Positions 16,201-57,205 of a stretch of DNA of 64,000 bases are shown piece after piece; position 1 is the stretch's first letter; each line of letters begins with the position of its first letter. Where the stretch lies: NCBI GenBank assembly GCA_002269645.1, contig NIVC01002777.1:77259-141258 (forward strand). The letters run 5' to 3'. Source of the stretch: Macrostomum lignano. Lineage: Eukaryota. Below the pieces are notes generated by a model. That model saw only the letters and a list, made by a program, of their open reading frames with translations, had not been told where the DNA came from and did no database searches. A program made the translations under genes and the position numbers.

Positions 16201-16679
16201 ATACAGACCTGCACATCCACCCAGTCGGCAGGGATATGAATATTGCGCCGCGCAATAGCCTCTCGATCAAGCCGATGACTCAGTCGGCACTGCGCATCTC
16301 GTGGGCATTTCTTTCCTAGTGCAGTTGATGGACAGCAGTGCAAATTGGGACACTTGGCTGGTCCTAGACGACACTTTCCACGCCAATAGTGCGTGCAGGG
16401 TCGAACAAATGCTTGCCGAAGGATGTATCTGTGGCGCTGTGCCTCGCACTTTGGTGACAACTTTGGAAAATAGTGTTTCAATATATTCTCATTATGCATT
16501 GTCAGGGTTGAATGCGCCATTTTACAGTTGGACTCGGCTTTGCAATAGCCAGCCAGCCATCTTGAGCATATGTGGAGACTGCAGCACTGTTTATCCTTGC
16601 AAATTGCAGCATTCCTATACATTGAGCACAGTTGTAAATTTTTGGGAAAATGAGTGCCCTGTTGATGCTTAGGAGGCAT
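10285..16679 (-). CDS. ZAP (ZC3HAV1)/PARP12-like protein, copy A: three 4xCCCH zinc-finger modules + ZnF5-WWE-WWE, no PARP domain seen
   Basis: Exons 16679-16209, 15681-15313, 15087-14671, 13564-12785, 12385-11916, 11305-~10285 (possible donor near 10325) join in frame at GT-AG sites. CxxLHxC finger pairs, winged-helix-like leaders ([14 protein letters not shown]), LCEEFL..C..C..H.VPYLWQW..W and NWRWFF..GAW..LEEAF..RRRP follow the ZAP/PARP12 pattern. Confidence 0.85.
12430..12690. repeat. 15-bp minisatellite (CAGAATCCCACAGCT family) in intron of ZAP-like copy A
   Basis: About 17 units; same unit as 39236-40215, inverted. Confidence 0.95.
13575..14665. repeat. compound minisatellite intron (49-bp array 13575-14215; ~23-bp-family array 14230-14665)
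   Basis: Tandem GATGGCTGTGATGACGAGTACAGCTGAAGCTGCAGGTGACTGATTGGAT, then ACAGCACAAAACAGCAATTACTG-type units; fills the whole intron. Confidence 0.95.
15110..15220. repeat. ~21-bp intronic minisatellite
   Basis: About 5 units of GACTATAGGGGAGCTTTCACT. Confidence 0.8.
15808..16125 (-). mobile_element. tRNA-derived SINE with CORE/Deu-like central domain and (TTA)n tail
   Basis: Minus strand begins GGGGTTGTAGCCTAGTGGTTAGAGCG (A box) ... GGTTCGATTCC (B box), then GTGTCCTTGAGCAAGACACT...CACCCAGCTGTAAAATGGG, and ends in an (AAT)n run at 15808-15825. Confidence 0.85.
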
Positions 16680-27266: not shown

Positions 27267-30200
27267 GGGTGTGTATAAAAGCTGGCACTGGCACATTGGA
27301 CACATTGGACACCCCTTTTTATAACAAAATTAGATATGAAAATGCAAAATAAACTTGCAGAGCTACTTTTAAAAAATTTAAAAAAAATGATAATAATAGA
27401 AATGACATCCTTGCTTTTGTGATAAATGATTTGTTAAATATTCTTTGTATTATCGTTTTTTGTACATGTTTAATTTGGCATTCGATTTTTTAAAATAATC
27501 GCACATGCAAAAACTGTACAGCTTGCAATGCTATTACTCTGTGATTTTACTACCCCGAAGGTTCTGTACTACAGGCGTACCGATTTAATGCTAAATATGC
27601 CTGATATATGAAATGATCAAACTAATAGTCAGAACTCAATTCTCCATAAAATGATGAAGCATTCTGCTCTTATCAAAAAACCACAACTTATTTTGTTAGG
27701 ATTACTTCATGAAGAACGAACTTTGGATATTCCAAATTGCAAGTATTTCTATATTAAAAAAGTTAATACATTGGCAGATTATTTGATGAAAAAATTGCAC
27801 CCAAAAAGTTTTTTTTACTTTGAAAGATGATGAAAATATTAATAATTTCCAAGCTTCTTCTTTTATTAGTTCAATTACTTTTTGTATGATTTCAACCAAC
27901 AAAAAAGGAATAGCTACTCAGTGAAAGTTCAAATTACAGTCTCTTCTTTATATACAATCCTTTTAAGAAAACCTTTATTATTATGAATAATTTGCCAAGT
28001 CATGATATTTAAGAAATTGTGCTAATCATTTAAATTATGAGTTAAAAAATGCAAGCATATAAGTAAAAAATCTACCCTACAGACCAAGAAGTCTTTTTAC
28101 TGAAAAGTTATATGTGACGCTTTGAATAAACAACATATAAACCATCTTCACATAACATTAATTGTCATTTATTTCAGACCTAAATCCTTTAGCACATTAA
28201 ATATTCTGCACGTATGTTGCAGGGTATACTTCCTTCTTCTAAAATCCTACAAATGACACAAAGTTTTAATAGGCAAATTTATTAGTATTGTTTATATTAA
28301 TATTTCTATGTTTATGAGAAGTTTTCCAATAAGAACAAGTTCCCAATCATTAAAACACGATTTTTTAATTCTAATGTCTAAAATTATGGTGTTCTAAGGG
28401 ACCAAGTGATAGGTTTTAAGCTACTATTAGCACCTGCATGATTTATGTATTTAATACCTACACATTCCTTAATATCTATAGTTCGCCTAATTGCCTAATT
28501 GCTAACCCTAATTCTAGCCTTCTTGGCTTACAAGTTTGAGTCTTCACAGCATATTATTCAATGCAAGCCCTACTAATTTTATTAGCCTCTCTTAATTTTA
28601 TAAAATAATAATTTTCTTTAGTGTAACTGCTCCAAAAATTTCAACTTTAATTTAAGTGGTGTGCCGAAACACCACTTGCACCATTACAGCCCTGTCTATA
28701 ATTTTTTTGTGCTAATTGGTTGACCACTTTCAATAATTTTCTTGGGTCAAGAGTGTGATATCTGCATATCGCAGCATGAATTTTTTAAAGAATCCCTAAT
28801 TTTATACAAGGAATCATATATATTTATAGAAAGTTAGCTCTTAGAGTAGAGATAAAGTACATAAGACTATTAAAAGCAACTTTTCATACAATTGCTTATG
28901 GTAATGATTTCTATTGTTATAAAGTTACAAATAAATAAAAAGTTACATTGCATTTAAACTGTACTTTATGAGTTGTAAGCCTTTCAACTCAGAGTGCACT
29001 TCAATTGCTTTAATATACATTGCTAGATGTTATTTAGCATTTCTTTGTTATTTATCATTTAACTCATTGCATTGTTTAATTGCTAATTTCATTTGCTCAG
29101 CTGCAATATTTATTACTTTTTTATTAATGCCAATGTTTGTTATACTTTTTCTCCCAATTTTTAGTGTTTGTGGTATTCTTTTGTGAAATTTTAATTTTTC
29201 AGCTGTATCTATCTTTACAAAAAATTGTACCTGTAAACTTATGGTTTTTTGCTTACAATGGTACTGTACTAAATTATATTTTATTTCCTTGTTAGATTCT
29301 CTAAATTGAAAAAGTAATGCACTGCTTTATTATCATGCATATTGAATATTAAGGATAGTTAGTATTCCTTCCTTGAAAAAGATTCTAGAGTTGGATTCTA
29401 TTTGATAAGAGAATAAATAATTTATTGAGTTTAAATGTTTTTAAAACATTAATTAATTGCATTTTGATGGAAATCATAACTTAAAAAATTATTCGTTTTT
29501 TTATTTAAGACACGGGGGATTTCAAAAGTCCATATTAACAACAAATCAAACATTAAAATTATGGGAGAGAGAGAGAGAGAGAGAGAAGTATTAGATTCAC
29601 TTTCACCATTGCTGTTGATTTATGGAAAGGCAGTAAACAAGCCAGAGCAGCTGCAAATTGTCAAATATGCCATGTCCGGCTATAAAATTCTGCAACTAGT
29701 CTGCTGCTCACTTTTTCCAACGTTTATTGAGGACAAGAAACGGCATTTAATGTTTCTATGTTTTCTGTAAGTGCACAAACTAGGTAAATGAAAATGACGT
29801 ACCGAAAGTAGTTCGACAATAAAGCAAGATAAGAAATGAATTTAAATGTAGTATAAAACTTGTTGATACTACCAATCTCATGGTTGTTAGAAGTATATGA
29901 AAAATGCAATTATAAATAAATATTTACATTTTCATTCGAAAGCCAAAGTATATTTATTCAAGCAAAACAACGACCAAAACTCGATTTTTGTTAACATAAG
30001 GGGTGTCCAATGTGCCAATGGTGCCCTGCGGGTGTGTATAAAAGCTGGCACTGGCACATTGGACACATTGGACACCCCTTTTTATAACAAAATTAGATAT
30101 GAAAATGCAAAATAAACTTGCAGAGCTACTTTTAAAAAATTAAAAAAAATGATAATAATAGAAATGACATCCTTGCTTTTGTGATAGATGATTTGTTAAA

Positions 30201-32734
30201 TATTCTTTGTATTATCGTTTTTTGTACATGTTTAATTTGGCATTCGATTTTTTAAAATAATCGCACATGCAAAAACTGTACAGCTTGCAATGCTATTACT
30301 CTGTGATTTTACTACCCCGAAGGTTCTGTACTACAGGCGTACCGATTTAATGCTAAATATGCCTGATATATGAAATGATCAAACTAATAGTCAGAACTCA
30401 ATTCTCCATAAAATGATGAAGCATTCTGCTCTTATCAAAAAACCACAACTTATTTTGTTAGGATTACTTCATGAAGAACGAACTTTGGATATTCCAAATT
30501 GCAAGTATTTCTATATTAAAAAAGTTAATACATTGGCAGATTATTTGATGAAAAAATTGCACCCAAAAAGTTTTTTTTACTTTGAAAGATGATGAAAATA
30601 TTAATAATTTCCAAGCTTCTTCTTTTATTAGTTCAATTACTTTTTGTATGATTTCAACCAACAAAAAAGGAATAGTTACTCAAGAAATTGTGCTAATCAT
30701 TTAAATTATGAGTTAAAAAATGCAAGCATATAAGTAAAAAATCTACCCTACAGACCAAGAAGTCTTTTTACTGAAAAGTTATATGTGACGCTTTGAATAA
30801 ACAACATATAAACCATCTTCACATAACATTAATTGTCATTTATTTCAGACCTAAATCCTTTAGCACATTAAATATTCTGCACGTATGTTGCAGGGTATAC
30901 TTCCTTCTTCTAAAATCCTACAAATGACACAAAGTTTTAATAGGCAAATTTATTAGTATTGTTTATATTAATATTTCTATGTTTATGAGAAGTTTTCCAA
31001 TAAGAACAAGTTCCCAATCATTAAAACACGATTTTTTAATTCTAATGTCTAAAATTATGGTGTTCTAAGGGACCAAGTGATAGGTTTTAAGCTACTATTA
31101 GCACCTGCATGATTTATTTATTTAATACCTACACATTCCTTAATATCTATAGTTCGCCTAATTGCCTAATTGCTAACCCTAATTCTAGCCTTCTTGGCTT
31201 ACAAGTTTGAGTCTTCACAGCATATTATTCAATTCAAGCCCTACTAATTTTATTAGCCTCTCTTAATTTTATAAAATAATAATTTTCTTTAGTGTAACTG
31301 CTCCAAAAATTTAAATTTTAATTTAAGTAGTGTGCCGAAACACCACTTGCACCATTACAGCCCTGTCTATAATTTTTTTGTGCTAATTGGTTGACCACTT
31401 TCAATAATTTTCTTGGGTCAAGAGTGTGATATCTGCATATCGCAGCATGAATTTTTTAAAGAATCCCTAATTTTATACAAGGAATCATATATATTTATAG
31501 AAAGTTAGCTCTTAGAGTAGAGATAAAGTACATAAGACTATTAAAAGCAACTTTTCATACAATTGCTTATGGTAATGATTTCTATTGTTATAAAGTTACA
31601 AATAAATAAAAAGTTACATTGCATTTAAACTGTACTTTATGAGTTGTAAGCCTTTCAACTCAGAGTGCACTTCAATTGCTTTAATATACATTGCTAGATG
31701 TTATTTAGCATTTCTTTGTTATTTATCATTTAACTCATTGCATTGTTTAATTGCTAATTTCATTTGCTCAGCTGCAATATTTATTACTTTTTTATTAATG
31801 CCAATGTTTGTTATACTTTTTCTCCCAATTTTTAGTGTTTGTGGTATTCTTTTGTCAAATTTTAATTTTTCAGCTGTATCTATCTTTACAAAAAATTGTA
31901 CCTGTAAACTTATGGTTTTTTGCTTACAATGGTACTGTACTAAATTATATTTTATTTCCTTGTTAGATTCTCTAAATTGAAAAAGTAATGCACTGCTTTA
32001 TTATCATGCATATTGAATATTAAGGATAGTTAGTATTCCTTCCTTGAAAAAGATTCTAGAGTTTGATTCTTTTTGATAAGAGAATAAATAATTTATTGAG
32101 TTTAAATGTTTTTAAAACATTAATTAATTGCATTTTGATGGAAATCATAACTTAAAAAATTATTCGTTTTTTTATTTAAGACACGGGGGATTTCAAAAGT
32201 CCATATTAACAACAAATCAAACATTAAAATTATGGGAGAGAGAGAGAGAGAGAAGTATTAGATTCACTTTCACCATTGCTGTTGATTTATGGAAAGGCAG
32301 TAAACAAGCCAGAGCAGCTGCAAATTGTCAAATATGCCATGTCCGGCTATAAAATTCTGCAACTAGTCTGCTGCTCACTTTTTCCAACGTTTATTGAGGA
32401 CAAGAAACGGCATTTAATGTTTCTATGTTTTCTGTAAGTGCACAAACTAGGTAAATGAAAATGACGTACCGAAAGTAGTTCGACAATAAAGCAAGATAAG
32501 AAATGAATTTAAATGTAGTATAAAACTTGTTGATACTACCAATCTCATGGTTGTTAGAAGTATATGAAAAAGTGCAATTATAAATAAATATTTACATTTT
32601 CATTCGAAAGCCAAAGTATATTTATTCAAGCAAAACAACGACCAAAACTCGATTTTTGTTAACATAAGGGGTGTCCAATGTGCCAATGGTGCCCTGCTTT
32701 TATACATACCCGTGCCCTGCTTTTATACAGACCC
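27267..32734. mobile_element. Mutator(MULE)-like TIR element present as a head-to-tail dimer (27267-30029 + 30030-32734)
   Basis: 9-bp TSD TAATATTAA on both outer flanks; TIRs GGGTGTGTATAAAAGC...CATTGGACACCCCTT / AAGGGGTGTCCAATG...GCTTTTATACAGACCC. The two ~2.7-kb units are nearly identical (unit 2 lacks ~90 bp). The interior is AT-rich with only stop-riddled frames. Confidence 0.85.
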
Positions 32735-34560: not shown

Positions 34561-37500
34561 ATGGAGAAGCAGGAGCCATACAAGGACGCTCTGAACTTTG
34601 ACCATGTGTTTCGGCACATTCAGTCAGCGCCATTGCTGACGCTGGACAATGTGTTGAACTTCCTGCTGACTACAGGCGGCAGCGCCACGGTGCCAGAATT
34701 CCTGGAGAGATTCGCATTGGCATCAAATTTCCCACTGGATCAGTGGCTGTCGGATCAGCCAGGCGGGAAGCTCATTCTGTGTGAGGGGCGGCTCAATGCT
34801 TATCCTTGTGTTCGAATTTGCCAGTTCTACAATGGCGCCAAGGACAGCTGCACGAATCCGAAGTGCAAGCGGCTGCACTTCTGTCTGTGGTGGCTGGGCG
34901 ACCCAGATGGAAGGGTGCACAATGGACAGTGCGGTCTGGTTCACGGACTGGGAGATGCGCGCAATAAGGAGGTCTGTCAACTGCTGTTTTGTGCTGTCAG
35001 TAACTTATGTTTTGTGCTGCTTCATGCTGTCAGTAATTGCTGTTTTGTGCTGTCAGTAATTGCTGTTTTGTGCTGTCAGTAATTGCTGTTTTGTGTTGTC
35101 AGTTATTGCTGTTTTGTGCTGTTAATAACTGCTGTTTTGTGCTGTCGGTAACTGCTGTTTTGTGCTGTCAGTTATTGCTGTTTTGTGCTGTTAATAACTG
35201 CTGTTTTGTGCTGTCGGTAACTGCTGTTTTGTGCTGTCAGTTATTGCTGTTTTGTGCTGTTAATAACTGCTGTTTTGTGCTGTCGGTAACTGCTGTTTTG
35301 TGCTGTCAATAATTGCTGTTTTGTGCTGTCAATAACTGCTGTTTTTTGCTGTCAGTAACTGATGTTTTGTGCTGCTTCATGCTGTCAGTAGTGCTGTTTT
35401 ATGCTGTCAATAATAGCTGTTTTGTGCTGTTTCATGCTGTCAGTAATATCTGTTTTGTGCTGTTTCATGCTGTCAGTAGCTGCTGTTTTGTGCTGTCAGT
35501 AATTGCTGTTTCATGCTGTCAGTAGCTGCTGTTTTGTGCTGTCAGTAATTGCTGTTTTGTGCTGTTAATAACTGCTGTTTTTTGCTGTCAGTAATATCTG
35601 TTTTGTGCTGTTTCATTCTGTCAGTAGCTGCTGTTTTGTGCTGTTTTATGCTGTCAGTGACTCAGTATATTCTATTATGTGCTATGAGCAATTGCTGTCT
35701 TATGCTTTTAGTGATTGCTGATTGCTGTTTTAGGCTGTAACTAATGCTGTTTTGTGCTGTCATCACGATTTCCCTCTGTCACCTGCAGCTCCAGCTGTAC
35801 TTGTCATCACAGCCATCCAATCAGTCACCTGCTTGTCATCACAGCCATCATCCAATCAGTCACCTGCAGCTCCAGCTGTACTCGTCATCACAGCCATCAT
35901 CCAATCAGTCAGTCAGTCACCTGCAGCTCCAGCTGTACTCGTCATCACAGCCATCATCCAATCAGTCACCTGCAGCTTCAGCTGTACTCGTCATCACAGC
36001 CATCATCCAATCAGTCACCTGCAGCTTCAGCTGTACTCGTCATCACAGCCATCATCCAATCAGTCACCTGCAGCTCCAGCTGTACTCGTCATCACAGCCA
36101 TCATCTAATCATTCACCTGCAGCTTCAGCTGTACTCGTCATCACAGCCATCATCTAATCATTCACCCGCCCGCAGCTGCTTGCCCGCATTGGCCTCGGCG
36201 CAGTCGGCAGCCAGAAGGTCCTCGAGCTGCTGCGTGCGAGCCATCCAGCTGTGTGCGCCAAGTACAACACAGACAGCGGGTGTTCCGATGCCCGCTGCCC
36301 CGACATTCACATTTGCAACAACGCGCTGCACAGGGAAAACAAGCTGGCTAAGCAGCTGTGCCCCTGCCACAGGCGGCACGTCCTGGAGCCCGCCGCCAAG
36401 GACCCGGAGACGGCGGCCAAGCTGGCCAGGTTCGGCCTGGACGACAGCAACCTGAACTTCCTCGCCAGATCCTTCCTGGTACCCGCTGCGCTGCGAAACT
36501 CCCTGCCTACCATGGCCGGTGTCCCCGGACCCGCCCCTGCGCCCGCCCCTGCGCCCGAACCTGAGCCCACCCCGAGCCTGCCGCCCCCGCTGCCGGACGT
36601 GTCGGCCCTCGGCCTCGGCCTTCGCCCCGCCTACGCCGCGCTGATTCGCCGCAGCGGCCGAGCCGCACTGTCGGAGCTGCTGGCCGACCTGAAACTGCCG
36701 AGCGACTTCCCGCTGGAGCAGTGGCGGGACAGCATCGACGAGTTGATGAAGCCGCTGCAGAGCATGATTGACATCTACAAGGATGCTGTGAGCAGACAGC
36801 CGGTCAGCGTGAATGTGTTTCGCCGCTTCCGCATCTGCCCGATGCACAACGGGGCACCGAAGTCCTGCCAGAATGCGGACTGCTGCCAGCTGCACCTGTG
36901 CCTGTGGTTTCTGGCCGACCCCGACGGCAAAGTGCATGATAAGGTGGGTAGATGCACTTTAATTATGTGGATCAATATCCCCTTCCTGCAATCAGTCTCA
37001 TCCAAATAATGAAGTGGAAACAGCATGAAGACTGTTTTGCGACGTGACTAGTCAACAACTAACGAGTCTGGAAGAGGGTTCCTTCATAAATCTAGGAGCC
37101 CATTTTTTTTAAATATCAACGTACCCCGTCGGGAAATAATTGTCCCTTAACGGTGTCAAATGGCACACGAAAAAGGGAAAAAAATTTTAAAAAATTCTTG
37201 ATTCGTAACAAAAATTCGCAGTTTTAACTTTTCCACAACTGTGCAATGTGTTCCGTTTGGCACAGTAATATGCTGATTAGCATAACTGTGCCAATTGGAA
37301 TAGTAGTGCTTAGTTGGCAGAATTGCAGACTTTGCTGGGACAATTATTTCCCACCGGGGCCGTAGCGCATATTATTAAACAGACGCTGGCTCAGGGGTCA
37401 GCAAAGCACCCGTTGGTGGAAAACAGCTGAGTCAGAACTGAGGATAGAACTGTAAGAAATGTTTTGAATAATAAAAATATCGACGGCTATAGCTTTTTGC

Positions 37501-40500
37501 AGCCCATTTGGGCTTACGCTCATTGAATTTAATCCAATACGTTTGCCAATATAATGGAGCTTTTGTCTATGGTAGCAAGGCTGGCACAGTGGCATTCAAT
37601 TTGGTCCAAACGCTCGTGAGCCAGTCGGCCAAGCTCTTGAATTCTCGCAACCATCTGTGGGCTGTTGTGTACCGCTGGAATGTCAGCGTCTCTACCGACA
37701 ATTTTTAGTCGCTCTTCCAGATCTCTGCTCATAGTCGAGATCTGATAACCAACTGGAACTGTTCCTTCAACTTTTGTTGCATTTCGGCAACGTCAACAAG
37801 GGTTCGACTCAACTGCATCGAGTAGCAGTTGGACTTGAGGCTCTTGAGCAACTTGCCTTGGCGATTGCTATCCTTTTGCAGGCGAGCTCTGTCGGCAGTG
37901 GTTTTAACGCGCTGATTGATGCTGTAAACCATCTTTTCTTTTACATTAAGCAACCTTGTAATGTCATTTGGGTGTTCAATCAGAAGCCAATGGCATTCGT
38001 TCGAGTTCGAGACAGTCTAGCATATGGTCCACAATTCTGGGGCTGATCTTGCTCCTCGGAAACAGTTGCTACGGACCAAATTGATGCTTGTTGTTGGACC
38101 AAATTAAATGATGCTGTGCCACCCATTTGCTACCATAGACAAAAGCTCACTTTGGCAAACGTATCTCGGATTAGATTCAATAATATGTGTAGGCCCAAAT
38201 GCGCTGCGAAGAGTTTCTTTGTAACCACTAGCAAAATATAATTAATCTCCTATTAGGCAAAATGCCAGCTATGTCACGACCTATTCGGTCGGAACCATCG
38301 GATTCGACAGGCGCTGGGCATTGGTGTGAAGTACAAACAGGCCGATATTATTAGCCTGCTACGTGCATGTCATCCGAATGTCTGCTTAGACTACAACACT
38401 GAGCCGGGCTGCAGCCGACCCAGCTGTCCCTACATCCACGTGTGCAACAACGCTCTACGCTCCGGCCTGCAGGCTAGCATGGACAAGGCTAATAAAAAGC
38501 AGACACAGATCACTTGCGCCTGTCTTAGGCAGCACAAACTGGAGCAGGACAGCGTGGCAAAGCTGCAGGCCTACGGGCTGGCTGACGAGAAGCTCAGTCT
38601 TGTGTTTCGCTCCTATCTGGTGCCGGCTGCGCTACCGAGACGCGCTAAGGTCGATCCGCCAGCTAAGCCAGCTAAATTCGATAAGGCCAAGGCTAAAGAG
38701 GCCACAGAATCCAAACAGAAGGCTGCTAAAGCTGAGGAGAAACCAACTGCTAAAAAAGCCGCCCCGAGCCTGCCGCCCCCGCTGCCGGACGTGTCGGCCC
38801 TCGGCCTCGGCCTTCGCCCCGCCTACGCCGCGCTGATTCGCCGCAGCGGCCGAGCCGCACCGTCGGAGCTGCTGGCCGACCTGAAACTGCCGAGCGACTT
38901 CCCGCTGGAGCAGTGGCGGGACAGCATCGACGAGTTGATGAAGCCGCTGCAGAGCATGATTGACATCTACAAGGATGCTGTGAGCGGACAGGCGGTCAGC
39001 GTGAATGTGTTTCGCCGCTTCCGCATCTGTCCGATGCACAACGGGGCACCGAGGTCCTGCCAGAATGCGGACTGCTGCCAGCTGCACCTGTGCCTGTGGT
39101 TTCTGGCCGACCCCGACGGCAAAGTGCATGATAAGGTGGGAGATGCGTTTGACTTGTGCAATTTGATTTGATCAATATCCCCTTCCTGCAATCAGTCTCA
39201 TCCCGCAATTGAGTCTGCAACATGAAATTAACTCAGCTCAGAATCCCACAGTTCAGAAACCCACAGCTCAGAATCCCACAGCTCAGAATCCCACAGTTCA
39301 GAATCCCACTGCTCAGAATCCCACTGCTCAGAATCCCATAGCTCAGAATCCCACAGCTCAGAATCCCACAGCTCAGAATCCCACATCTTACAGCCCCACT
39401 GCTCAGAATCCCACAGCTCACAGCCCCACTGCTCAGAATCCCACAGCTCAGAATCCCACATCTTACAGCCCCACTGCTCAGAATCCCACAGCTCACAGCC
39501 CCACTGCTCAGAATCCCACAGCTCAGAATCCCACAGCTCAGAATCCCACAGCTCAGAATCCCACAGCTCAGAATCCCACAGCTCAGAATCCCACAGCTCA
39601 GAATCTCACAGCTCAGAATCCCACAGCTCAGAATCCCACAGCTCAGAATCCCACAGTTCAGAATCCCACAGTTCAGAAACCCACAGCTCAGAATCCCATA
39701 GCTCAGAATCCCACAGTTCAGAATCCCACAGCTCAGAATCCCACAGCTCAGAATCCCACATCTTACAGCCCCACTGCTCAGAATCCCACAGCTCACAGCC
39801 CCACTGCTCAGAGTCCCACAGCTCAGAATCCCACAGCTCAGAATCCCACATCTTACAGCCCCACTGCTCAGAATCCCACAGCTCACAGCCCCACTGCTCA
39901 GAGTCCCACAGCTCAGAATCCCACAGCTCAGTATCCCACAGCTCAGAATCCCACTGCTCAGAATCCCACTGCTCAGAATCCCACAGTTCAGAATCCCACA
40001 GTTCAGAAACCCACAGCTCAGAATCCCATAGCTCAGAATCCCACAGCTCAGAATCCCACAGCTCAGAATCCCACATCTTACAGCCCCACTGCTCAGAATC
40101 CCACAGCTCAGAATCCCACAGTTCAGAATCCCACAGCTCAGAATCCCACAGCTCAGAATCCCACAGTTGAGAATCTTACAGCTCAGAATCCCACAGCTCA
40201 GAATCCCACAGCTCAAAGTCCCTCATTAAAAATGCCCCAATGCCCTTCCGCATTCCTCAGGCGGACTGCAGGCTCTGCCACGACCTCAGCGGCCGCAACC
40301 ACCGAATTCGCAGCGCCTTGGGCATCGCAGACGGCCTGAAACAGCGGGAGGTGCTCAACCTGCTGCTAGCCAGCCACCCGAAGGTGTGCTCAGCCTACAA
40401 CTCAGAATCCGGCTGTCAACAAACTGACTGTGCCGACATTCACCTGTGCAACAACGTCAAGTTCAAGCAGTGCGGCAAGTGCCGCTGCCGCAGGCAGCAC

Positions 40501-41808
40501 GTGCTGAGCATGGATGAGCAGACCAAGATGAAGCTGAACCCCTTCGACATGGACAAGATGGAGCCTGGTCACGTGCTCAGGTCTTTCTTGATTCCCGCCC
40601 CGCTGCCCAACACCAACCCAAACGAAAAACCCGAGCCTCCAGCCGTGGCCTCTCAGCAAGAGTTATCGAAACCAAAGGATTTGGCCCCTTCCGAGCAGGC
40701 CAAGGGCAAAAAGGCCAAGCCAGAAGTGCCCAGCCTATTAAATATTAATGCCGCTCAAGGCGTCGGCTTAAAGCCGCAACTGCAGGAGCAGCAGCATCAG
40801 AAAAAGAAAAAGCAGAAGACTCCTTCTGTTGCTTCCGATTTATCCAGTGAACCTGACACTGCTGGGCTAAAAAAACAACAACAGCGGCAGCAGAAGGCTG
40901 ACTTGCAAAGCAAGCGCCAAAGCAAGCTGTCCGCAGGCAGTGTGCCAAACATTGCAAAGTTGAAACTCGGCAGCAGCCCAAAAGCTCAGCAAAAGCCGCC
41001 CGTTGCCTCAGCCGCCGCCAATCCAAAGGCGCCTCGTGCCGCTCCTAGCGAGGAAACCCTGTGCGAGGAGTTCCTCCGGCACGAATGCTTCTCCCAGAAT
41101 TGTCCTCGGCGGCACTGCCCTCACAAGGTCCCTTATCTGTGGCAGTGGCGGGCCGCCCACTGGCCGCCGGGCCGCTGGCAGGACGTGGACGCCGCGCTGA
41201 ACGAGCAGCTGGAGGCGGCCTTCTGCCAGCCCGACCGCTCCGACTTAGTGACGGTCGGCAGCGGCGAGCTCGGCTCCGAGTTCCCCGGTCAGCTGACGCT
41301 GTCGTTCGTTGCCGGTTCGGCCGATAGATTCGAGATTCGGTCGGTCTCGGGACACCTGAAGCCTCCCGGCGGCCTCCGCTGCCTCCGCACGGAGAGCCGC
41401 GCCAGCCTCCACCGGCCCCTGGCCACCAACTGGCGCTGGTTCTTCCTTGGCAGCCACGGCGCCTGGAGCTCCGTTGAGATTCTTCCAGAGCCCGGCCTCA
41501 ACGAAAAGCTCGAGGAAGCGTTTTGCCGCGGCGACTCCAGCTTGACTGTCGGGCAGTGCGGCTGCAAGCTCGACTCAATGCTCATCTCCATGCCCGGAGC
41601 TCCGCAGGAGATGCCGCTACGTCGCAGGCCGGCGCCACGGATGCAACCGGTGACCCATCCGCTCATGTCGGTGCAACAACCGGGTCTGTTCTATCCAGGC
41701 CAGAACCCTGTCATGGGCATCGGCCAGCCGTCCATGTATCCCACTATGCCAACCTACGGCTACTCGATGGGTCAGATGAGTGGCCAGCAGGGCCCGGTGC
41801 ATAGGTGA
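34561..41808 (+). CDS. ZAP (ZC3HAV1)/PARP12-like protein, copy B: three HTH+4xCCCH modules + ZnF5-WWE-WWE, no PARP domain seen
   Basis: Exons 34561-34971, 36176-36943, 38257-39135, 40261-41803/41808 (phase-0 GT-AG joins NKE|LLAR, HDK|AKC, HDK|ADC). Domains are near-identical to copy A. The 5' start and a possible extra 3' exon (41955-41990) are uncertain. Confidence 0.87.
34972..36170. repeat. compound minisatellite intron (~23-bp family, then 49-bp family)
   Basis: Inverted counterpart of 13575-14665. Confidence 0.95.
37124..37359. mobile_element. small MITE-like element
   Basis: ~23-bp TIRs CCCCGTCGGGAAATAATTGTCCC / GGGACAATTATTTCCCACCGGGG; no TSD evident. Confidence 0.6.
39236..40215. 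repeat. 15-bp minisatellite in intron of ZAP-like copy B
   Basis: About 65 units of CAGAATCCCACAGCT; produces the spurious NPTAQ ORF. Confidence 0.95.
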
Positions 41809-43160: not shown

Positions 43161-43960
43161 AGTGATTCCCCCACGAGTCTTCTATGATTGACAGGACAAT
43201 TCTTTTTGGCTGAACCCTACCTTGACCTCATGAGCCACAGCAATTCAGCACTTTACCCCGTGTGCCTTTTTCTTTTTTTCTAGTATCTCACCAATTTTTT
43301 TAACATTAGTTTTTTATTAAAAACTATGTGACAATATTGAAATTCAATCATTTCAGACCTGGCGGACTTTAAATTGCGCAACGGACTGAATGATCTGAAG
43401 TGATAATTAATACACACTGCCTATATTGACTCTATTTACACATGGGTTGATATGGTGGATTTTATTACTTTTACACACAATCGCAAATTAACTTAGCAAT
43501 TCCATACAGCGTTTTTGTCTAGTTTATTTATCGTCATAGATTATACCATTATACAAGTAATGGTGTTCGCTTCCCCACTGGATATTTTCTGCAGCTACTA
43601 GTCTATCTCAAATACTTAAAAAATTAAGCGCTCATACTGATACTATAATAGCGTATAATACATGACTAGATTCTTCAAATAAAAATGCCAATGAAAATTA
43701 AAAAAAGATGGCTAAATTCGTCATTGTTGTTTTCGAACTTCTATTGTTAAAAACTCTGTAGAGTTTTGTACTCGTAAAATTCCATATTGAAGCCGATAGG
43801 ATTGCGTGTGTATTTGAAGGATTGATGGGATTGATTAGCAACAATTTAGAAGCTTGAGCAGATTAAAATGTTCAGAAATAATCGACACTTATTTACTGTT
43901 GTTAAGATTTAGAACAACTAGTAGGCAGTCAGTTGTAGAGCTTGGAGTACTTGAATGCCG

Positions 43961-46900
43961 TCACATGTACTGTTCGTCATCTTCATTGCCGTAGATGTAC
44001 TGAAACATGACCAGCTTTTCCAGCACTTCTTTATATGCTTCTTTCTCCTCTCGGCTGAGGAATTCTCCTTCGGGGTCGATCTCATCTCGTAGGATATAGC
44101 CGTCTGAAATGTTTTTCAATTTTATCTGAATCAATAAAGCTAAAATACTACCAACTTTTCGACTACCTTTCAGGATCTCTCACTTGTCAGTGTTGACCAC
44201 AGATGTTCCATGACCCGTTGGCCCTACGCACAGCAAACTCACACTTGTCAGTGTTGAGCACAGATGTTCCATGAGCCATTGACCCTACACACAGCAGACT
44301 CACACTTGTCAGTGTTGAGCACATATTTTCCATGAGCCATTGACCCTACACACAGCAGACTCACTTGTCAGTGTTGAACACAGCTGCTCCATGAGCCACA
44401 CACAGCAGACTCACACTTGTCAGTGTTGAACACAGCTGCTCCATGACCCACACACAGCAGACTCACACTTGTCAGTGTTGAGCCCAGCTGCTCCATGACC
44501 CATACACAGCAGACTCACACTTGTCAGTGTTGAGCACAGCTGCTCCATGACCCAAACACAGCAGACTCACACTTGTCAGTGTTGAGCACAGCTGCTCCAT
44601 GAGCCACACACAGCAGACTCACACTTGTCAGTGTTGAGCACAGCTGCTCCATGACCCACACACAGCAGACTCACACTTGTCAGTGCTGAGCACAGCTGCT
44701 CCATGACCCACACACAGCAGACTCGCACTTGTCAGTGCTGAGCACAGCTGCTCCATGACCCACACACAGCCAGTGCTGAGCACAGCTGCTCCATGACCCA
44801 CACACAGCAGACTCACACTTGTCAGTGTTGAGCACAGCTGCTCCATGACCCACACACAGCAGACTCACACTTGTCACTGTTGAGCACAGCTGCTCCATGA
44901 CCCACACACAGCAGACTCACACTTGTCACTGTTGAGCACAGCTGTTCCATGAGCCATTGACCCTACACACAGCAGACTCACACTTGTCAGTGCCGGGCAG
45001 CCTGCCCAGAGCTCTGTTGCACTCTCCATCGTCGCCAAAGTACTCCTTCCAGATCTCCACCTTCTCCCCGGCAGGCGGATCCAGCCAGACTGACCGGGAC
45101 TTGCCGTCGACCGTGTAGCGCTTATTCTTGCCGTTTTCTATTATCAAAGCTTTTTGCTTCTTAACAGCCGGTGTATTAACAGCATTTGAGGTGTAGACTG
45201 TGGCGATGAGACGGGTGCTCGGCATTATCTGCGATGGACAATAATCAATTTTGTCTAATTCCTTTCCTAACAACAAAGATAACAGGGCACACTGTCACAA
45301 AAGGTCTTGAAGGCGCCTCAAAACTTAAGAGATAGAATCCTTAAGCTAAAGGATGCCTGCAGCGTCAGCAGCAGCAGCACATCCTGTACGGGTTGTAGGT
45401 AGAAAGCCTCAGCGCGGATGATGTGGCCTATCAGATGTCGCTGACGTTTTATTAAAGGGGTCGGCAAACTCCGGACTGCGAACCACATGGCGGCTCGCAA
45501 AGCTTCTCTATCCGGCCTTCGAGTTTTATAACTTCACAATAGCAATTCTTCTCATTTTTATTCCCTCAAACCAATCTTCCTAATCCTAACAAAATCTGTC
45601 TATTTACTTCGCTATACTTTTCTTTGATTCGCCATAGCTACTTATTAGTAGAGCGTCTTGCATTTTAACAGTTCTTTGCATACTGACTGGTTCTCTCGCA
45701 TAGAATCCTTAGCTGTTGCTTTAATAATTTAATTCAAATATAGACCAGGCTTTTAACACATTAATCGCAAGGAAAATTGCTATGCACGTCAATTTGGTAA
45801 GCAAAGCTACACATTGCAAACATCGTTAAACTGTAAAGCGTAGCAGATTAGAGAGCTTGGAAAGCAGTAAACCGCTGCCAATTTGCGTAAATTTGTGCAA
45901 CCCAGTGAGGCTTATGATTGAAAAAATTCGACCGTAAATTTTCTTACACTGGCTCCGTTGGTAGCCAACTGGCCCAGTACCACTTCCTGTTTAGATGCTG
46001 AATCTTAAACTATCTATCCTATACTGTAATGTAAAGGCCATGTCACTGGCTTTTCCTTTCAATGCATATTGCTTCTTTTGGAGAAGCTTGAATGCGATAG
46101 AATTGAGGCCGTTGCAAAAGCTTTGTTTATTAACTAAATAAGAGAATTTACATGAAGTTCTTGACAAGAGAGGTGCGGTCATTTAAAAACCATCATCTCT
46201 AAGATTTGGCAAAGAAAATTGACTCACTTCGAAAAGAGATTTCACTTTTTCTGGCACGTCGTGCGGAAAATTCGATGTGCTTAGCAACTGATCAGTGCTT
46301 CCCTTCGATTTGTCCTTCTTCCGGTTGAGAAATGAGAGCGGTTTTCTGCAATTTCACATGGTGAATTCAGCGACCACAAGTGCACTTCATATAGTGATTG
46401 CATCAAGTTGAAAAAACGCGCACGCTTCTAGACTTATAACAAACCTTAATACGAGCTACGTGTACATGTAGATAAATCGAAAAATATGATCATACTCTGA
46501 TAGTAATTTAATCTTTCCTGTTGATTGCATGCATGGCCTTCCGTGAAAGACCTGCGAAAAAGCTCTTGTGCTCGTAAGCGACTTTGACTAAATTGAATGA
46601 ATTAAAATCATCTTAATTAGATTTCGAAGTGAACCCTGTAGATTGCTGCATGAATATCTGTAGATTGCTACATGTATATAAATATTTGTAGATTGTTCAA
46701 GGAATATCTGCAGATTGCCGTAGGAATACATGTATCTGTAGATTGTTTAGGAATATCTGTAGTCTGCTGTATATCTGTAGATTGCTGTTAGGAATATCTG
46801 TAGATTGCTGTTAGGAATATCTGTATATTGCTGTTAGGAATATCTGTAGATTGCTGTTAGGATTATCTGTTGATGCTGTTAGGAGTATCTATATATTGCT

Positions 46901-52552: not shown

Positions 52553-55500
52553 CTACCCGGCACTCTCGCCAGCCTCCCCGCCTTCAACTGCACCAGCTGA
52601 AGGCTCAGACTGCTGCTCACCAGGTGGTGCCGACTTCTCAATCAGTCCGGCTGACTCGCTGCTCTCAGCCCACGGCTGCAGCTCGCCAGAAGAGCAGAAC
52701 AGATAGAATAGCGAGGTGGCCACGTGGACCAGGGCTGCGATGAAGAACACCAGCTGCCACTCGCCGGCTGTGCCGTGTCGAGTCACTGCGCTGGCCACGA
52801 TGGGAGACAGGACGCCTGTGCGGTTTCAGGGTGGGGGGTTATAGCGGCTGAGTTGATCAGGCTGCGTATGCTCTATACGGATTATTCCTTTTGCACACAT
52901 CAGATTGCTAATTAAGGACTTCTTAGAAGATAACGCAGGGGAGGGGCTACGGCTCTTTTAAAGAAGACGCTCCAGTACATGCATTTAGCCTCTTGGGCAG
53001 GACATCTGCCTACCTACCAAAAGAGACAGGTGCGCCCACCTATACATGTAAATCCGTGCATCCGACGTCAGACGTTCCCGACATCGTGCGACGTCCATTG
53101 CAAATTTTTATTTTTATACCTTACACAGACGTTCACCCGACGTTAGTAAAAAGTATTTAGGACGGCAGGAATAACAAAAAATAATCAGAAGTACTCGATT
53201 GGTCATCGTAGGATGATGGATACACCTGTCAATCAGTGGAACATGTATAGCTACGAGCTACATGTAAAGCGCGATCAAGTAGAGCTCGGGACCAAACCCG
53301 AGACACTTTATCCAAGTCCCTCTCTTGTAGGGTTTTCAGCCGACTTTTCCGACAATTTATCGATTGCATTCAGTAGCCCTCCCTCTGTTTCATTTGCCAA
53401 CCAACAAAGTTCGACAGTCTGGCGCTCACCTGACACGGTGCCAACACCATTGGAGATGCCCATCAGGAATCCAGCGAATCTGGGCGCAATGTCCAAATGG
53501 TTGACGCCGTAGCCGGACATGCCAATCCCCGTGAAGCCCAAGCCTATGGTCAGGAAGGCTGTGGACAGGTAGAGATTGCGCGAGATGCCCACAACAACTA
53601 GGCAGGCCGCCATTACGCCGAACCCGACAGTGTTGAATAGACGACGCGTCGCCGTGGTGGACAGGAACTTGCGACGAACGCAGTCGGCAAGGGTGCCACC
53701 TGCAATTTTCAGGGAGAGTTTAAGATCCATTTAGCATACTTGCGGGAGTATTTTTATAGTATTTTTCTAGGATTGTTACGAAAGACGCTAATTTAGGTTG
53801 GGTTTAGTTTGCTTAATAGAGGAAAGGCAGACTCAAGGATGAGGGAACGGAGAGACTGACTCAAGGATGAGGGAACGGAGAGACTGACTCAAGGATGAGG
53901 GAACGGAGAGACTGACTCAAGGATGAGGGAACGGAGAGACTGACTCAAGGATGAGGGAACGGGGAGGCTGACTCAAGGATGAGGGAACGGAGAGACTGAC
54001 TCAAGGATGAGGGAACGGAGAGACTGACTCAAGGATGAGGGAACGGAGAGACTGACTCAAGGATGAGGGAACGGAGAGACTGACTCAAAGATGAGGGAAC
54101 GGAGAGGCTGACTCAATGATGAGGGAACGGAGAGGCTGACTCAAGGATGAGGGAACGGGGAGGCTGACTCAAGTATGAAGGAAAAGAGAGGCTGACTCAA
54201 AGATGAGAGAACGGGGAGGCTGACTCAAGTATGAAGGAACAGAGAGGCAGACTCAAGGATGATTAATCTAATTGCCTCGCAATATTGTTATCGATTTGTT
54301 CTTAGTGAGTGAGTTATATTCTAACATAAATGTACATCTTGGTTTGCATAATTCATGTACATCGTATTGTTCACTTTTAGAACCTCAAATATATAATCGC
54401 TAACTTGGCCAGTTTGGGCCTCACGTTTTTTCTCGCTCAGCTTAAACCGCAGTCTTCAGACTTTACAATGAAGGAAGACTCAAGGATGATAAAGGAACGG
54501 AGAAGCAGACTTAAGGATGAGGGAACGGAGAGGCTGACTCATGGATGAGGGAACGGGGAGAGGCTGACTCAAGGATGAGGGAACGGGGAGGCTGACTCAA
54601 GGATGAGGGAACGGGGAGGCTGACTCAAGGATGAGGGAACGGAGAGGCTGACTCATGGATGAGGGAACGGAGAGGCTGACTCAATGATGAGGGAACGGGG
54701 AGAGGCTGACTCAAGGATGAGGGAACGGGGAGGCTGACTCAAGGATGAGGGAACGGAGAGGCTGACTCATGGATGAGGGAACGGAGAGGCTGACTCAAGG
54801 ATGAGGGAACGGGGAGGCTGACTCAAGGATGAGGGAACGGAGAGGCTGACTCAAGGATGAGGTAACGGAGAGGCAGAATCAAGGGCTGAGCTGGAGAGCG
54901 AGTTAAGAAGCAAATTTTAGAAAGGTTGAAAACTTATTATAATAGTATATCTAAAAGCAATTGAAAAGCTTGAATAAAATGGACAGAACTGAAAGCAGAC
55001 TTTGAACTGGGCATTTCTTGAAAAGCTTTAAAAAGAACGCACCAACTGGCGTGAGCCCGGCCATGAGCAGGAACGGAATCATTAAATAAATTCCAACCTC
55101 CTCGCTATTCAAATCGAACACTCGCGAGAAATAGGCCGGCAGGCCGATCATGCTGAACTGGAAGCTCCAGTTGCGCCCGACGTTGGCAAATACGATGGCC
55201 CATACGGGCAGCGACCTGACCATCGCTGCGCAAGGCACCTGGCCTGTAGCTGTGGCTGGCACGCTGCTGCTCTCAATGTAGGCCAGCTCCTCCGGGCTGA
55301 TGTAGGGATCGGTTGCCGGCCTAGAGTGCACGATGAGGAACCAGGCAACCGCCCAGGCGCAGCCGAGCGCCCCAAAGATGTAAAAATTCACTGGCCAGCC
55401 CAGATTGGTGGTGACGGCGCCGCAGAGCGGCAGGCCAACAATGGGCCCGAGGGCCATGCCGAAGAAGGAAATCGTCACTAGTTTGGATCGCTCCATCTCG

Positions 55501-56129
55501 GGCGCCCAGAATCGCCAGATGCCGTGAACGGAAGGATAGAGGCAGCCCTCGGCCATGCCCTGCAGCAGCCGGATGGTGAGGGTGACGCCGAATGCGGCGG
55601 ACGGCACCTCCAGATGAGCGGCCGTCGGCACGGCAATGTTCAATAGGCAGGTGATCAGCACGGAGCTTCCCAAGAGCATGTTTGGCTCCAGGTAGGACGA
55701 CATGAAGCCAGCCGGTATGCTGAACAAAGCGTAGCCGATAAAAAATGAAGCCTCAATGATGCCAATGTCCAGGTGATCCCAGGCCACCTCCTGAACCAGC
55801 TCGATTTTGTAGTAGGTGTGATTCCGAGCGGTCATCTCCACCTTCTCCGGTTGCTTTTTGGTCATCTTGATAATGGCGATGCCCATCTCTGAGCGCATCG
55901 CCAGCACCACCATGAGGCCGAGGCAGCTGAGCCACGCCACTACGTAGCGCTTCCAGCCGGGGCCGGTGCAGCGGCCTTCAGCTATGCCGACGCCCGCCGA
56001 TTTGCCCGACATTTGTCTTCGTTTTTCGCTTCCGCTCCGTCCAAGGCCGATGCCGCTGCCTCCTCTGCTGTCCCAGATGACGTCGGAGTCGTCTGCGTCG
56101 CTATTGTCGCTAGAGCCGGTTGAAGGCAC
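52553..56129 (-). CDS. SLC17-family (VGLUT/sialin-like) MFS anion transporter
   Basis: Exons ~56129(56204)-55043, 53699-53430, 52815-52553 with phase-1 GT-AG joins. Motifs C..KRYVVAWLSCLG...MRSEMGIAI, W..IGII.ASFF.GY...IPAG, RLLQGMAEG..YP..HGIW..WAP..ERSKL, NHLDIAPRFAG.LMGISNG.GT.SG, W..VF and SGELQPWA are diagnostic. The 5' end is uncertain (first in-frame ATG 56012). Confidence 0.92.
53830..54880. repeat. 28-bp minisatellite, two arrays (53830-54260, 54480-54880), in SLC17 intron
   Basis: TGACTCAAGGATGAGGGAACGGAGAGAC units. Confidence 0.95.
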
Positions 56130-57205
56130 CGGTTGGTGAGTCGCTGCTGTCGCTGCCGCCGCCGCCGCTGCGGGAGTGCCTCTACGATGGCTGATCGTCT
56201 TGCTCTACGCGGTCGGGAGTTCTTCCGTCTGGAATTTTCTGCGCTCTAACGAATCTGTAGATTCAGTGCAACAGTTTCCAGTGAGGCCAATATATGCCTG
56301 AATTTAGTACGGAAATAGAAAGAGACCGACAGTGGGAAGAAAAATCAAGCAACCCGCGTGTGCAATTCCTTACAATTCTGACAGTGAGAGATCAAGTTAT
56401 AGGGAAGGAAATTGCAGGGTTAGTGGTCTCTTAGACTTGCGTTGGAAATATTTGCGCTTGAATTTTTTATGTAGGCGTACGTCTCAACGCTGAACCGGAC
56501 GAGTGGGTAGGAAAGATCGGTTTCGGTGTAGAGCTGGCCGGGTATTGCAGCAGGAATTGGAGCACTATAAAGCTCAACTGAGCGAGTTCTGTATAGGGGC
56601 TTGAGCAACAACGGATTAGAAGCACGGATGTACAGTTCTTCCACTCCATTCAACTGGAGTTTGTCGCCTCGGTGTGCCATTTTAAGGGAGAGGGGGAGAG
56701 AAATACTAGGAAAAGAAAAGAGAAAAGTATACCAAACTTCTCGATCCCCATTGACTCTAACATTTTGCAAGGAGGCCCATATATGAAGGCGAATTGATTT
56801 GGGTTAAATTCTATACAGACGAAAAATTATATAAAGCTCCTGCTGCTACGGAAGGACAAAATTTTACAGAGCGGCATGGCGACTGACGATTGTGGCAACA
56901 GCTGGCAGCTGTTGCTCGCAGAGGGGCGCGTGTATAACAAGGTACATGTATTAATAATGTCCGTATATGTACACTATATATACCTCAATGCTCAAAAGGC
57001 AAATTACACTCTAATCATACACAAGTGTATTGTACATGTCGTAGCTTTAAATTCCTGCGCTGAGCACTCAAATCAAGGATTTGTCATTACTTTGCTCAAT
57101 AAATGCGTGTAGCTACGAACGTGCGTACGTACTTACTGTCTTTGTTTACCGAAATTCCCAGTTTTTGTTTTTTTGCGCACACTCGGACGGAAATTAATTA
57201 TTGAA

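Follow-up and report, generated by a model that had tools for sequence, protein, structure and literature searches.

The locus described here raises the question of how two closely related genes of the flatworm Macrostomum lignano came to differ by one zinc-finger module, and whether the additional module is a recent copy or an old part of the gene. The window, that is, the whole stretch of 64,000 nucleotides (nt) analysed, was taken from the end of contig NIVC01002777.1 (positions 77,259 to 141,258, forward strand) of assembly GCA_002269645.1 (Mlig_3_7), and its positions 42553-64000 are 100% identical to the contig end. Self-comparison of the window revealed an inverted pair of paralogous genes, A (minus strand, ~15078-10477) and B (plus strand, 34564-41649). 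Their modules of ~240 amino acids (aa) consist of a winged-helix region and four CCCH fingers, as in the RNA-binding domain of ZAP/ZC3HAV1. The extra module lies in exon 3 of gene B, and its history was probably one of ancestral presence, partial gene conversion with the neighbouring exon, and loss from the A-type lineage by non-allelic homologous recombination (NAHR).

Exon 3 of gene B (38257-39135, plus strand) is 879 nt long (293 codons), of phase 0-0 and bounded by canonical AG/GT splice sites. It shares with exon 2 (36176-36943, plus strand; 768 nt, phase 0-0, present in the annotated product P0163) a direct repeat that runs on into the following intron. The first copy, R1 (36567-37003, plus strand), comprises 377 nt of exon 2 (36567-36943) and 60 nt of the intron, while the second, R2 (38759-39203, plus strand), comprises 377 nt of exon 3 (38759-39135) and 68 nt of intron 3. 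By self-BLAST the two copies were 95.07% identical over 446 columns. A preliminary description of this DNA had reported that the segment occurs twice in B, from 36571 and 38763, and once in A; the BLAST comparison agreed, with starts within 1-4 nt of those positions. The exonic parts differed at 6 of 375 sites, or at 5 of 372 in a codon alignment (98.4-98.7% identity), and the terminal 82 nt of R1 and R2 were identical. Each copy ends with a 34-nt intronic block (36970-37003 and 39170-39203, respectively) that is identical in R1, R2 and gene A and was found nowhere else in the window, the chance expectation being 0 matches. The repeats lie 2.2 kb apart, with 1755 bp (37004-38758) between them.

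Within exon 3 the near-identity of R stands beside strong divergence. The 5' half of the exon (38257-38758, plus strand) codes for C2, a diverged half-module with the zinc fingers (ZnF) ZnF2b, ZnF3 and ZnF4, and for a Lys/Ala-rich linker. The 5' halves of exons 2 and 3 shared 56.4% nt identity, with third codon positions at 35% (saturated), whereas the 3' halves shared 98.7%, with third codon positions at 99.2% (Fisher p = 3e-51 for the contrast). When identity was followed along the two exons, the shift was abrupt and included the silent sites, and the fusion of a diverged half to a near-identical half that had been proposed for this exon was thereby recovered. Since 98.7% identity lies beside 56% within a single exon, a conversion-like event, as also proposed, is needed, and from this pattern we infer gene conversion as the likely mechanism.

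At the protein level, C1, C2 and C3 of gene B were pairwise 43-49% identical, R1 and R2 were 96.8% identical, and N1 was ~40% identical to R1/R2. The closest matches of C2 were C3 (68% nt, 40% aa) and C1 (45% aa). C2 retains all the invariant Cys/His residues in an open frame of 167 codons. Its GC content at third codon positions (GC3) was 0.65 and that of its linker 0.43, against 0.81-0.86 in C1, C3 and R, with a jump at the R2 edge. Judged by these identities, recent copying accounts for just one half of the extra module, whereas the C2 half is as old as the split between C1 and C3 and as the module array. The age of C2 contradicts the earlier statement that the extra module was made by a near-identical internal duplication.

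The core of gene A that is homologous to B (10288-15087, minus strand) has exons at 15087-14671, 13564-12785, 12385-11916 and 11305 to ~10288; it codes for two modules and a WWE region and has no equivalent of exon 3, and its linker and tail differ from those of B. The single R copy of A (12716-13161, minus strand) has its exon part down to 12785 and continues with an intron start of the R2 type. A 13161-12719 (minus strand) was 97.7% identical to the second copy of B, and A 13569-12716 was 94.1% identical to B 36171-37003. On the upstream side, A 13949-12716 aligned to B 35800-37003, which is the R1 side, while on the downstream side A 13161-12424 aligned to B 38759-39502, which is the R2 side. 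These alignments agree with the earlier observation that A has the upstream sequence of the first copy of B and the downstream intron of the second. The structure of B can be written as X-R1-Y-C2-R2-W and that of A as X-R-W.

The homeologous region is found on a second contig, NIVC01000815.1 (pieces L001 and L003), which was compared over 51 kb and has the same order of gene A and the MFS-transporter gene. On this contig the homeolog of A, A' (in L003; P0165 = GenBank PAA76514.1), is also without exon 3 and has the same junction structure as A. No remnant of Y or C2 was found in A or A'. Both therefore carry a deletion-type junction, in which a single R copy is bordered on the left by the R1 flank and on the right by the R2 flank, while the DNA in between is gone without a trace. 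The unequal crossover that had been proposed is upheld by this arrangement, which is the one that recombination between direct repeats yields; as to its direction, originally given as gain or loss, loss in A is here judged the more likely.

Three copies, A, A' and B, were compared for divergence, while at least four closely related copies were seen (A, A', B and the B-like P0164). The genome of M. lignano, a neopolyploid, comprises three subgenome copies, ~1.1% apart in coding sequence (PMC10733133). A, A' and B were equidistant, at ~1.6-1.8% over the shared exons. The synonymous divergence (pS) was 0.011 between R1 and R2 and 0.011-0.028 between A and B, but 0.094 in the C1 part. Judged by these values, R would have been homogenised about as recently as A and B were duplicated and the subgenomes split. 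The residues SDF, DSIDE and DCC in both copies of B and SGF, DNIDG and DCY in A were as reported, but their use as evidence of recent conversion within B did not survive the comparison with A'. Because A' carries the B residues, SGF, DNIDG and DCY are private substitutions of A; three sequences without an outgroup are in any case uninformative on this point.

A few sites were mixed among the copies. Site 36595 pairs A with A', while the linked sites 36794 and 36800 pair A with the first copy of B (B1) and A' with the second (B2). These three single-nucleotide polymorphisms (SNPs), which are possible polishing artefacts, hint that the copies have exchanged sequence or that A and A' each had a crossover point of their own. 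Amino-acid changes were enriched in R, with a ratio of amino-acid-changing to synonymous changes (N:S) of 11:2, compared with 20:25 for the remaining gene (p = 0.013, small counts). The excess points to relaxed or diversifying selection on the half coding for the helix-turn-helix (HTH) and ZnF1.

The history that we hold to be most probable starts from an ancestral gene that would already have had three modules, with C2 as an old component. The R segment of exons 2 and 3 (~440 bp, beginning where the linker meets the HTH and reaching 60-68 nt past the donor site) would have been kept or made near-identical by gene conversion, around the time at which A, A' and B separated. The resulting direct repeats, 98-99% identical at their distance of 2.2 kb, would have served for unequal (non-allelic homologous) recombination, by which Y, C2, the linker and one R were removed from the A-type gene, leaving the upstream flank of R1 and the downstream intron of R2. 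Of the two directions, loss in the A lineage is preferred to gain in B. The mechanism is ordinary exon gain or loss with gene conversion, and no new kind of mechanism is involved. Partial gene conversion and NAHR deletion between tandem exons or genes give the same pattern, namely paralogous units that are otherwise saturated but contain an island that is nearly identical down to its silent sites and the start of the intron. The junction in the paralog is likewise the one expected from recombination between such islands, as in known cases of conversion and NAHR. What is distinctive in this gene pair is that one side of a zinc-finger tandem, joined across the exon junction, comes from the homogenised half.

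Several points weigh against this history. The 5' edge of R sits in a linker without detectable homology between exons 2 and 3; it is awkward for a single simple conversion and would better fit concerted evolution acting on R alone over a long time, or a patch duplication of non-homologous origin. The shared tract is also discontinuous, as the 25 nt from the B1 donor to the 34-nt block are diverged, with 7 mismatches and a 9-nt gap. A and A' differ at both linked sites that distinguish R1 from R2, so that a single ancestral deletion would need a later conversion too. Patterns at the level of single SNPs are fragile, because Illumina and RNA-seq reads were used for the Pilon polishing of Mlig_3_7 (PMC5730564) and 93% of read pairs multi-map in this neopolyploid (PMC10733133); "conversion" signals of this kind in a polished neopolyploid assembly need confirmation from reads. 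The choice of loss over gain is made by parsimony without an outgroup, and with the comparison covering A, A' and B, exon 3 is known from B alone.

The opposite direction, a gain in B, would start from a two-module ancestor that received Y, C2 and the linker, with or without R2, from another PARP12/ZAP-like member by ectopic recombination or conversion; we consider it unlikely, although credible. It would agree with the two modules of both A and A', with the appearance of B as a derived, 5'-truncated duplicate without the two 5' exons of A, and with the GC3 of C2 and its linker (0.65 and 0.43), which is unlike that of the adjoining coding sequence; moreover, the equidistance of A, A' and B leaves little time for a separate loss. 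However, neither the window nor the 51 kb of the homeologous contig contains a second C2-like sequence, an exhaustive search of 1.84 billion representatives gave no protein with more than ~40% identity to C2, and any donor would need an R-Y-C2-R layout or an in-frame non-homologous join within the linker. The composition jump at the R2 edge could also be explained if a replication-based, non-homologous mechanism had placed a ~440 bp copy of R in an older exon 3, where it took the place of the original front half. The sharp 5' edge, with only 2-3 nt shared in a linker that is unalignable between exons 2 and 3, would suit such an insertion. Nevertheless, we find it rather improbable, since the replacement keeps register and frame exactly and brings along both the donor site and the beginning of the intron, as homology-guided exchange predicts; residual similarity extends ~30 nt past the 3' edge, and the mixed sites among A, A', B1 and B2 suggest repeated exchange.

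An error of assembly or polishing was judged very improbable, though the material is prone to it. In this case subgenome haplotypes would have been mis-joined or paralogs homogenised by Pilon, and the true locus would have one R or more diverged R copies. Mlig_3_7 is a Canu assembly of a three-subgenome neopolyploid; the assembly is redundant and partly chimeric, with chimeric scaffolds making up 36% of assembly length and copies often wrongly expanded or collapsed (PMC10733133), and the polishing reads cannot separate paralogs that are 97-99% identical (PMC5730564). Exon 3 is also in no deposited protein. Against an artefact, the 1755 bp between the R copies are unique and contain an intact, splice-flanked and in-frame half-exon that conserves its zinc ligands, which stutter from haplotype switching would not yield. 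In addition, the 440 bp of R are far below the PacBio read length, the intron starts of R1 and R2 clearly differ, and the large-scale order of A and MFS is repeated on the homeologous contig. A separate idea, suggested by the equidistance of A, A' and B, was that B is a third subgenome copy of A mis-joined in inverted orientation. This was ruled out, as the homology of A and B extends only from the exon 1 boundary to 41649/10477, with unrelated flanks on either side, and the order of A and MFS is kept on the homeologous contig.

The exon structure of gene B accounts for how a module can be gained or lost. Exon 1 (34561-34971, plus strand; ATG at 34561, GT donor of phase 0), placed by reading the sequence and by the exon model, codes for the winged-helix-like region, ZnF1 and the start of ZnF2 of module 1, and its donor, that of intron 1, lies ~15 codons further 3' within the module than is the case for exons 2 and 3. 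Exon 2 codes for C1 (the remaining zinc fingers of module 1), a Pro/Ala linker and R1 (the HTH-ZnF1 half of module 2). Exon 4 (40261-41804, plus strand) codes for C3, a linker and the WWE region and ends at a phase-2 donor (41804/41805), and the last coding exon (43357-43372, plus strand), which codes for ...R-PGGL-stop, ends at the annotated gene end with the C-terminus of P0163; the coding sequence of B stops 16 nt into it. The first four exons are joined by canonical phase-0 junctions, and the phase-2 donor then reaches the last exon. Each internal exon thus spans parts of two modules: it opens with the rear half of one (C), continues through a linker and closes with the first half of the following one (R). 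The phase-0 introns after "KVHDK" cut inside the ZnF1-ZnF2 tandem, and the PF25261 match crosses the KVHDK/ADC exon junction. Because the intron lies inside the module and is of phase 0, gain or loss of an internal exon breaks neither frame nor finger. Both frames are open, with a product of 1205 aa including exon 3 and 912 aa without it.

Intron 2 of B (36944-38256, plus strand; 1313 nt) has no counterpart in A past its first 60 nt, and no homology to it was found elsewhere in the window or in L001 or L003. It holds two inverted-repeat elements resembling miniature inverted-repeat transposable elements (MITEs), at 37124-37359 and 37493-38213, the second of which stops 42 nt 5' of the exon 3 acceptor. 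At its start, a cluster of changes (36956-36969) distinguishes B1 alone from B2 (39148-39169) and A, with identical sequence on both sides; it could be a clustered change or a separate micro-conversion. The 34-nt block was also considered as a docking/selector-type pairing element, and this was rejected, as its duplexes with introns 1-3 were no better than those of shuffled blocks (0.05-0.27 of the shuffles had an energy at or below the observed one).

In the databases exon 3 is skipped. GenBank PAA55276.1, the annotated product of the locus from the genome-guided transcriptome, equals the exon-3-skipped model exactly (residues 7-912, beginning at codon 7 of exon 1), and UniRef A0A1I8GJV3 is the same form from Met328. 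The deposited mRNA model, the single isoform deposited for B, splices exon 2 straight to exon 4, and the M. lignano annotation omits the intact exon 3. No protein containing C2 was found by the exhaustive or the word-indexed searches. The identical last 82 nt of R1 and R2 make short junction reads ambiguous between R1-exon 4 and R2-exon 4 joins. The extra module is accordingly only a predicted part of the product. Exon 3 has the structure of a cassette exon, with symmetric phase, canonical splice sites and a frame that is kept whether it is included or skipped. The exon would be either a minor, rarely used cassette or a relic silenced so recently that it is still intact, and the MITE-like element near its acceptor might weaken that acceptor.

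A further-reaching proposal is that exon 3 is a regulated cassette giving isoforms of two and three modules, with R1 and R2 kept identical for interchangeability, recurrent deletion and diversifying selection; we hold this combination to be quite unlikely. If true, R1 must fit both C2 and C3 while R2 must fit C3, since the ZnF1-ZnF2 tandem forms across each junction, and selection for interchangeability would keep R1, R2 and the donor-proximal intron identical by conversion. The identity of R would in turn make the array prone to deletion, so that A and A' could have lost the exon independently with different crossover points, and the N:S excess in R would reflect diversifying selection on an immune-type RNA sensor.

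The assignment of the modules to the ZAP/PARP12 type was obtained from structures and profiles. Residues 27-210 of a module (R and C half, 243 aa) matched ZAP 21-200 (PDB 3u9g, E = 8.6e-6), and the module also matched the ZAP structures 6l1w (E = 6.2e-5) and 6uei (E = 7.2e-5) from the HTH to ZnF4. A profile built from five window modules gave no match against PDB, which is attributed to its being shallow and gappy. In the four modules and the ZnF-only copy of gene A, 13-14 Cys/His columns were invariant, C2 included (C89, C99, C104, H108, C110, C127, H131, C167, C181, H185, C187, C198, C200 and H204, numbered by the first sequence). For PF25261 (PARP12-like CCCH tandem; cut-off 27 bits), module 3 scored 20.7 and module 2 15.3, while the ZnF-only module of A scored 27.9 and is the sole module here to pass; whole proteins gave no PF25261 match at E <= 0.01. 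An AlphaFold2 model of module 3 from a 5-sequence alignment had a mean pLDDT of 48.6, too poor for a fold search. Downstream of the fingers, WWE (PF02825) was marginal with 21.7-22.5 bits against a cut-off of 21.1, and UniRef names P0013 a "WWE domain-containing protein". No PARP catalytic domain (PF00644) was detected in A, B or P0165, while the Branchiostoma homolog P0018 has one. From its domain content, gene B resembles the short ZAP isoforms or ZAP-like genes and not a catalytic PARP.

An exhaustive HMMER search over the 1.84 billion representatives, M. lignano proteomes included, returned 223 relatives, the named ones being PARP12-like proteins of Branchiostoma and Pomacea, which carry PF25261 CCCH tandems and WWE domains. 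Word-indexed protein search was unreliable for this family: the module query came back empty and the whole-protein query missed the near-identical P0013 and P0163. Vertebrate ZAP (ZC3HAV1) has, as here, an RNA-binding module followed by one or more downstream WWE regions. It has one RNA-binding domain, against two in tandem in the B product (three if exon 3 is included) and a further ZnF-only copy in the A-type gene. Sequence identity to ZAP is low, PF25261 remains below threshold for the winged-helix modules, and the CpG-specific binding and antiviral role known for ZAP would be no more than candidate functions here. ZAP proper belongs to the tetrapod lineage, and among the known invertebrate ZAP/PARP12 ancestors a few are without a PARP domain (PMC8102003). 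Invertebrates typically have one ZAP/PARP12 gene copy (PMC8102003), in contrast to the four or more close copies in the neopolyploid M. lignano. The multi-module proteins P0015 and P0023 have 8-10 PF25261 matches each, against two per module here, which corresponds to ~4-5 tandem modules and makes a variable module count a property of the wider family; being only 28-32% identical to B, they are silent on recent gain, loss or conversion.

The locus is a small, clean example of an RNA-binding domain array that changes length. Introns inside the domain give exons with two half-domains, and a half that is kept identical between neighbouring exons would drive the loss of a unit in the paralog. It is, in addition, a flatworm record of ZAP/PARP12-type modules arranged in tandem with no PARP domain; the study of ZAP origin (PMC8102003) makes no mention of flatworms.

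Outside the region shared with B, gene A has two specific 5' exons (15313-16679, minus strand) without a counterpart in B: 16679-16209, with the ATG and a ZnF-only PARP12-type module, and 15681-15313, coding for an acidic region. The deposited proteins P0014, P0165 and P0175 splice such 5' exons to module exons. The ZnF-only first module (16209-16679, minus strand) is 157 aa long and has no winged helix. The homology of A and B starts exactly at the next module exon, where B has its ATG (34561) and A a splice acceptor (15088). In the linker, A' (L003 15612-15847) keeps a 235-bp segment of B type (B 40616-40850) flanked by a repeated "PLPNTN" coding motif, while A (12030-12047) has lost it; this is another deletion within the gene, a small one, and again lies between direct repeats, here short ones.

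Exons of A and B differ by only 0.5-4%, and the lower BLAST identity of the two genes (89-93%) is mostly due to minisatellite arrays and indels. The 15-nt minisatellite in intron 3 of B (39234-40215, plus strand) has ~65 copies, while the array in A (12431-12685) has ~17, and the 23/49-mer arrays of intron 1 also differ (B 35025-36166, A 13575-14654). In the C1 part of exon 2 (36176-36566, compared with A 13564-13162) the synonymous divergence between A and B was 3-8 times that of the other exons; these may have been homogenised between A and B while the C1 part escaped.

Elsewhere in the window, an Rfam scan gave nothing but a tRNA-like element in an intron of gene A (16056-16125, minus strand), outside the feature studied; it scored 37.8 bits with RF00005, was not called a tRNA by ARAGORN, is followed by a poly-C run, and is probably a tRNA-derived short interspersed element or a pseudo-tRNA. 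The AT-rich spacer between A and B contains a 2.7-kb direct tandem duplication (27267-30029 and 30030-32697, 99.4-99.5% identity). The MFS-transporter open reading frame (54954-56204, minus strand) lies in a region flanked by two arrays of a 52-nt minisatellite (44177-45230 and 60918-62434), which are inverted relative to each other, 16 kb apart, and also present on the homeologous contig.

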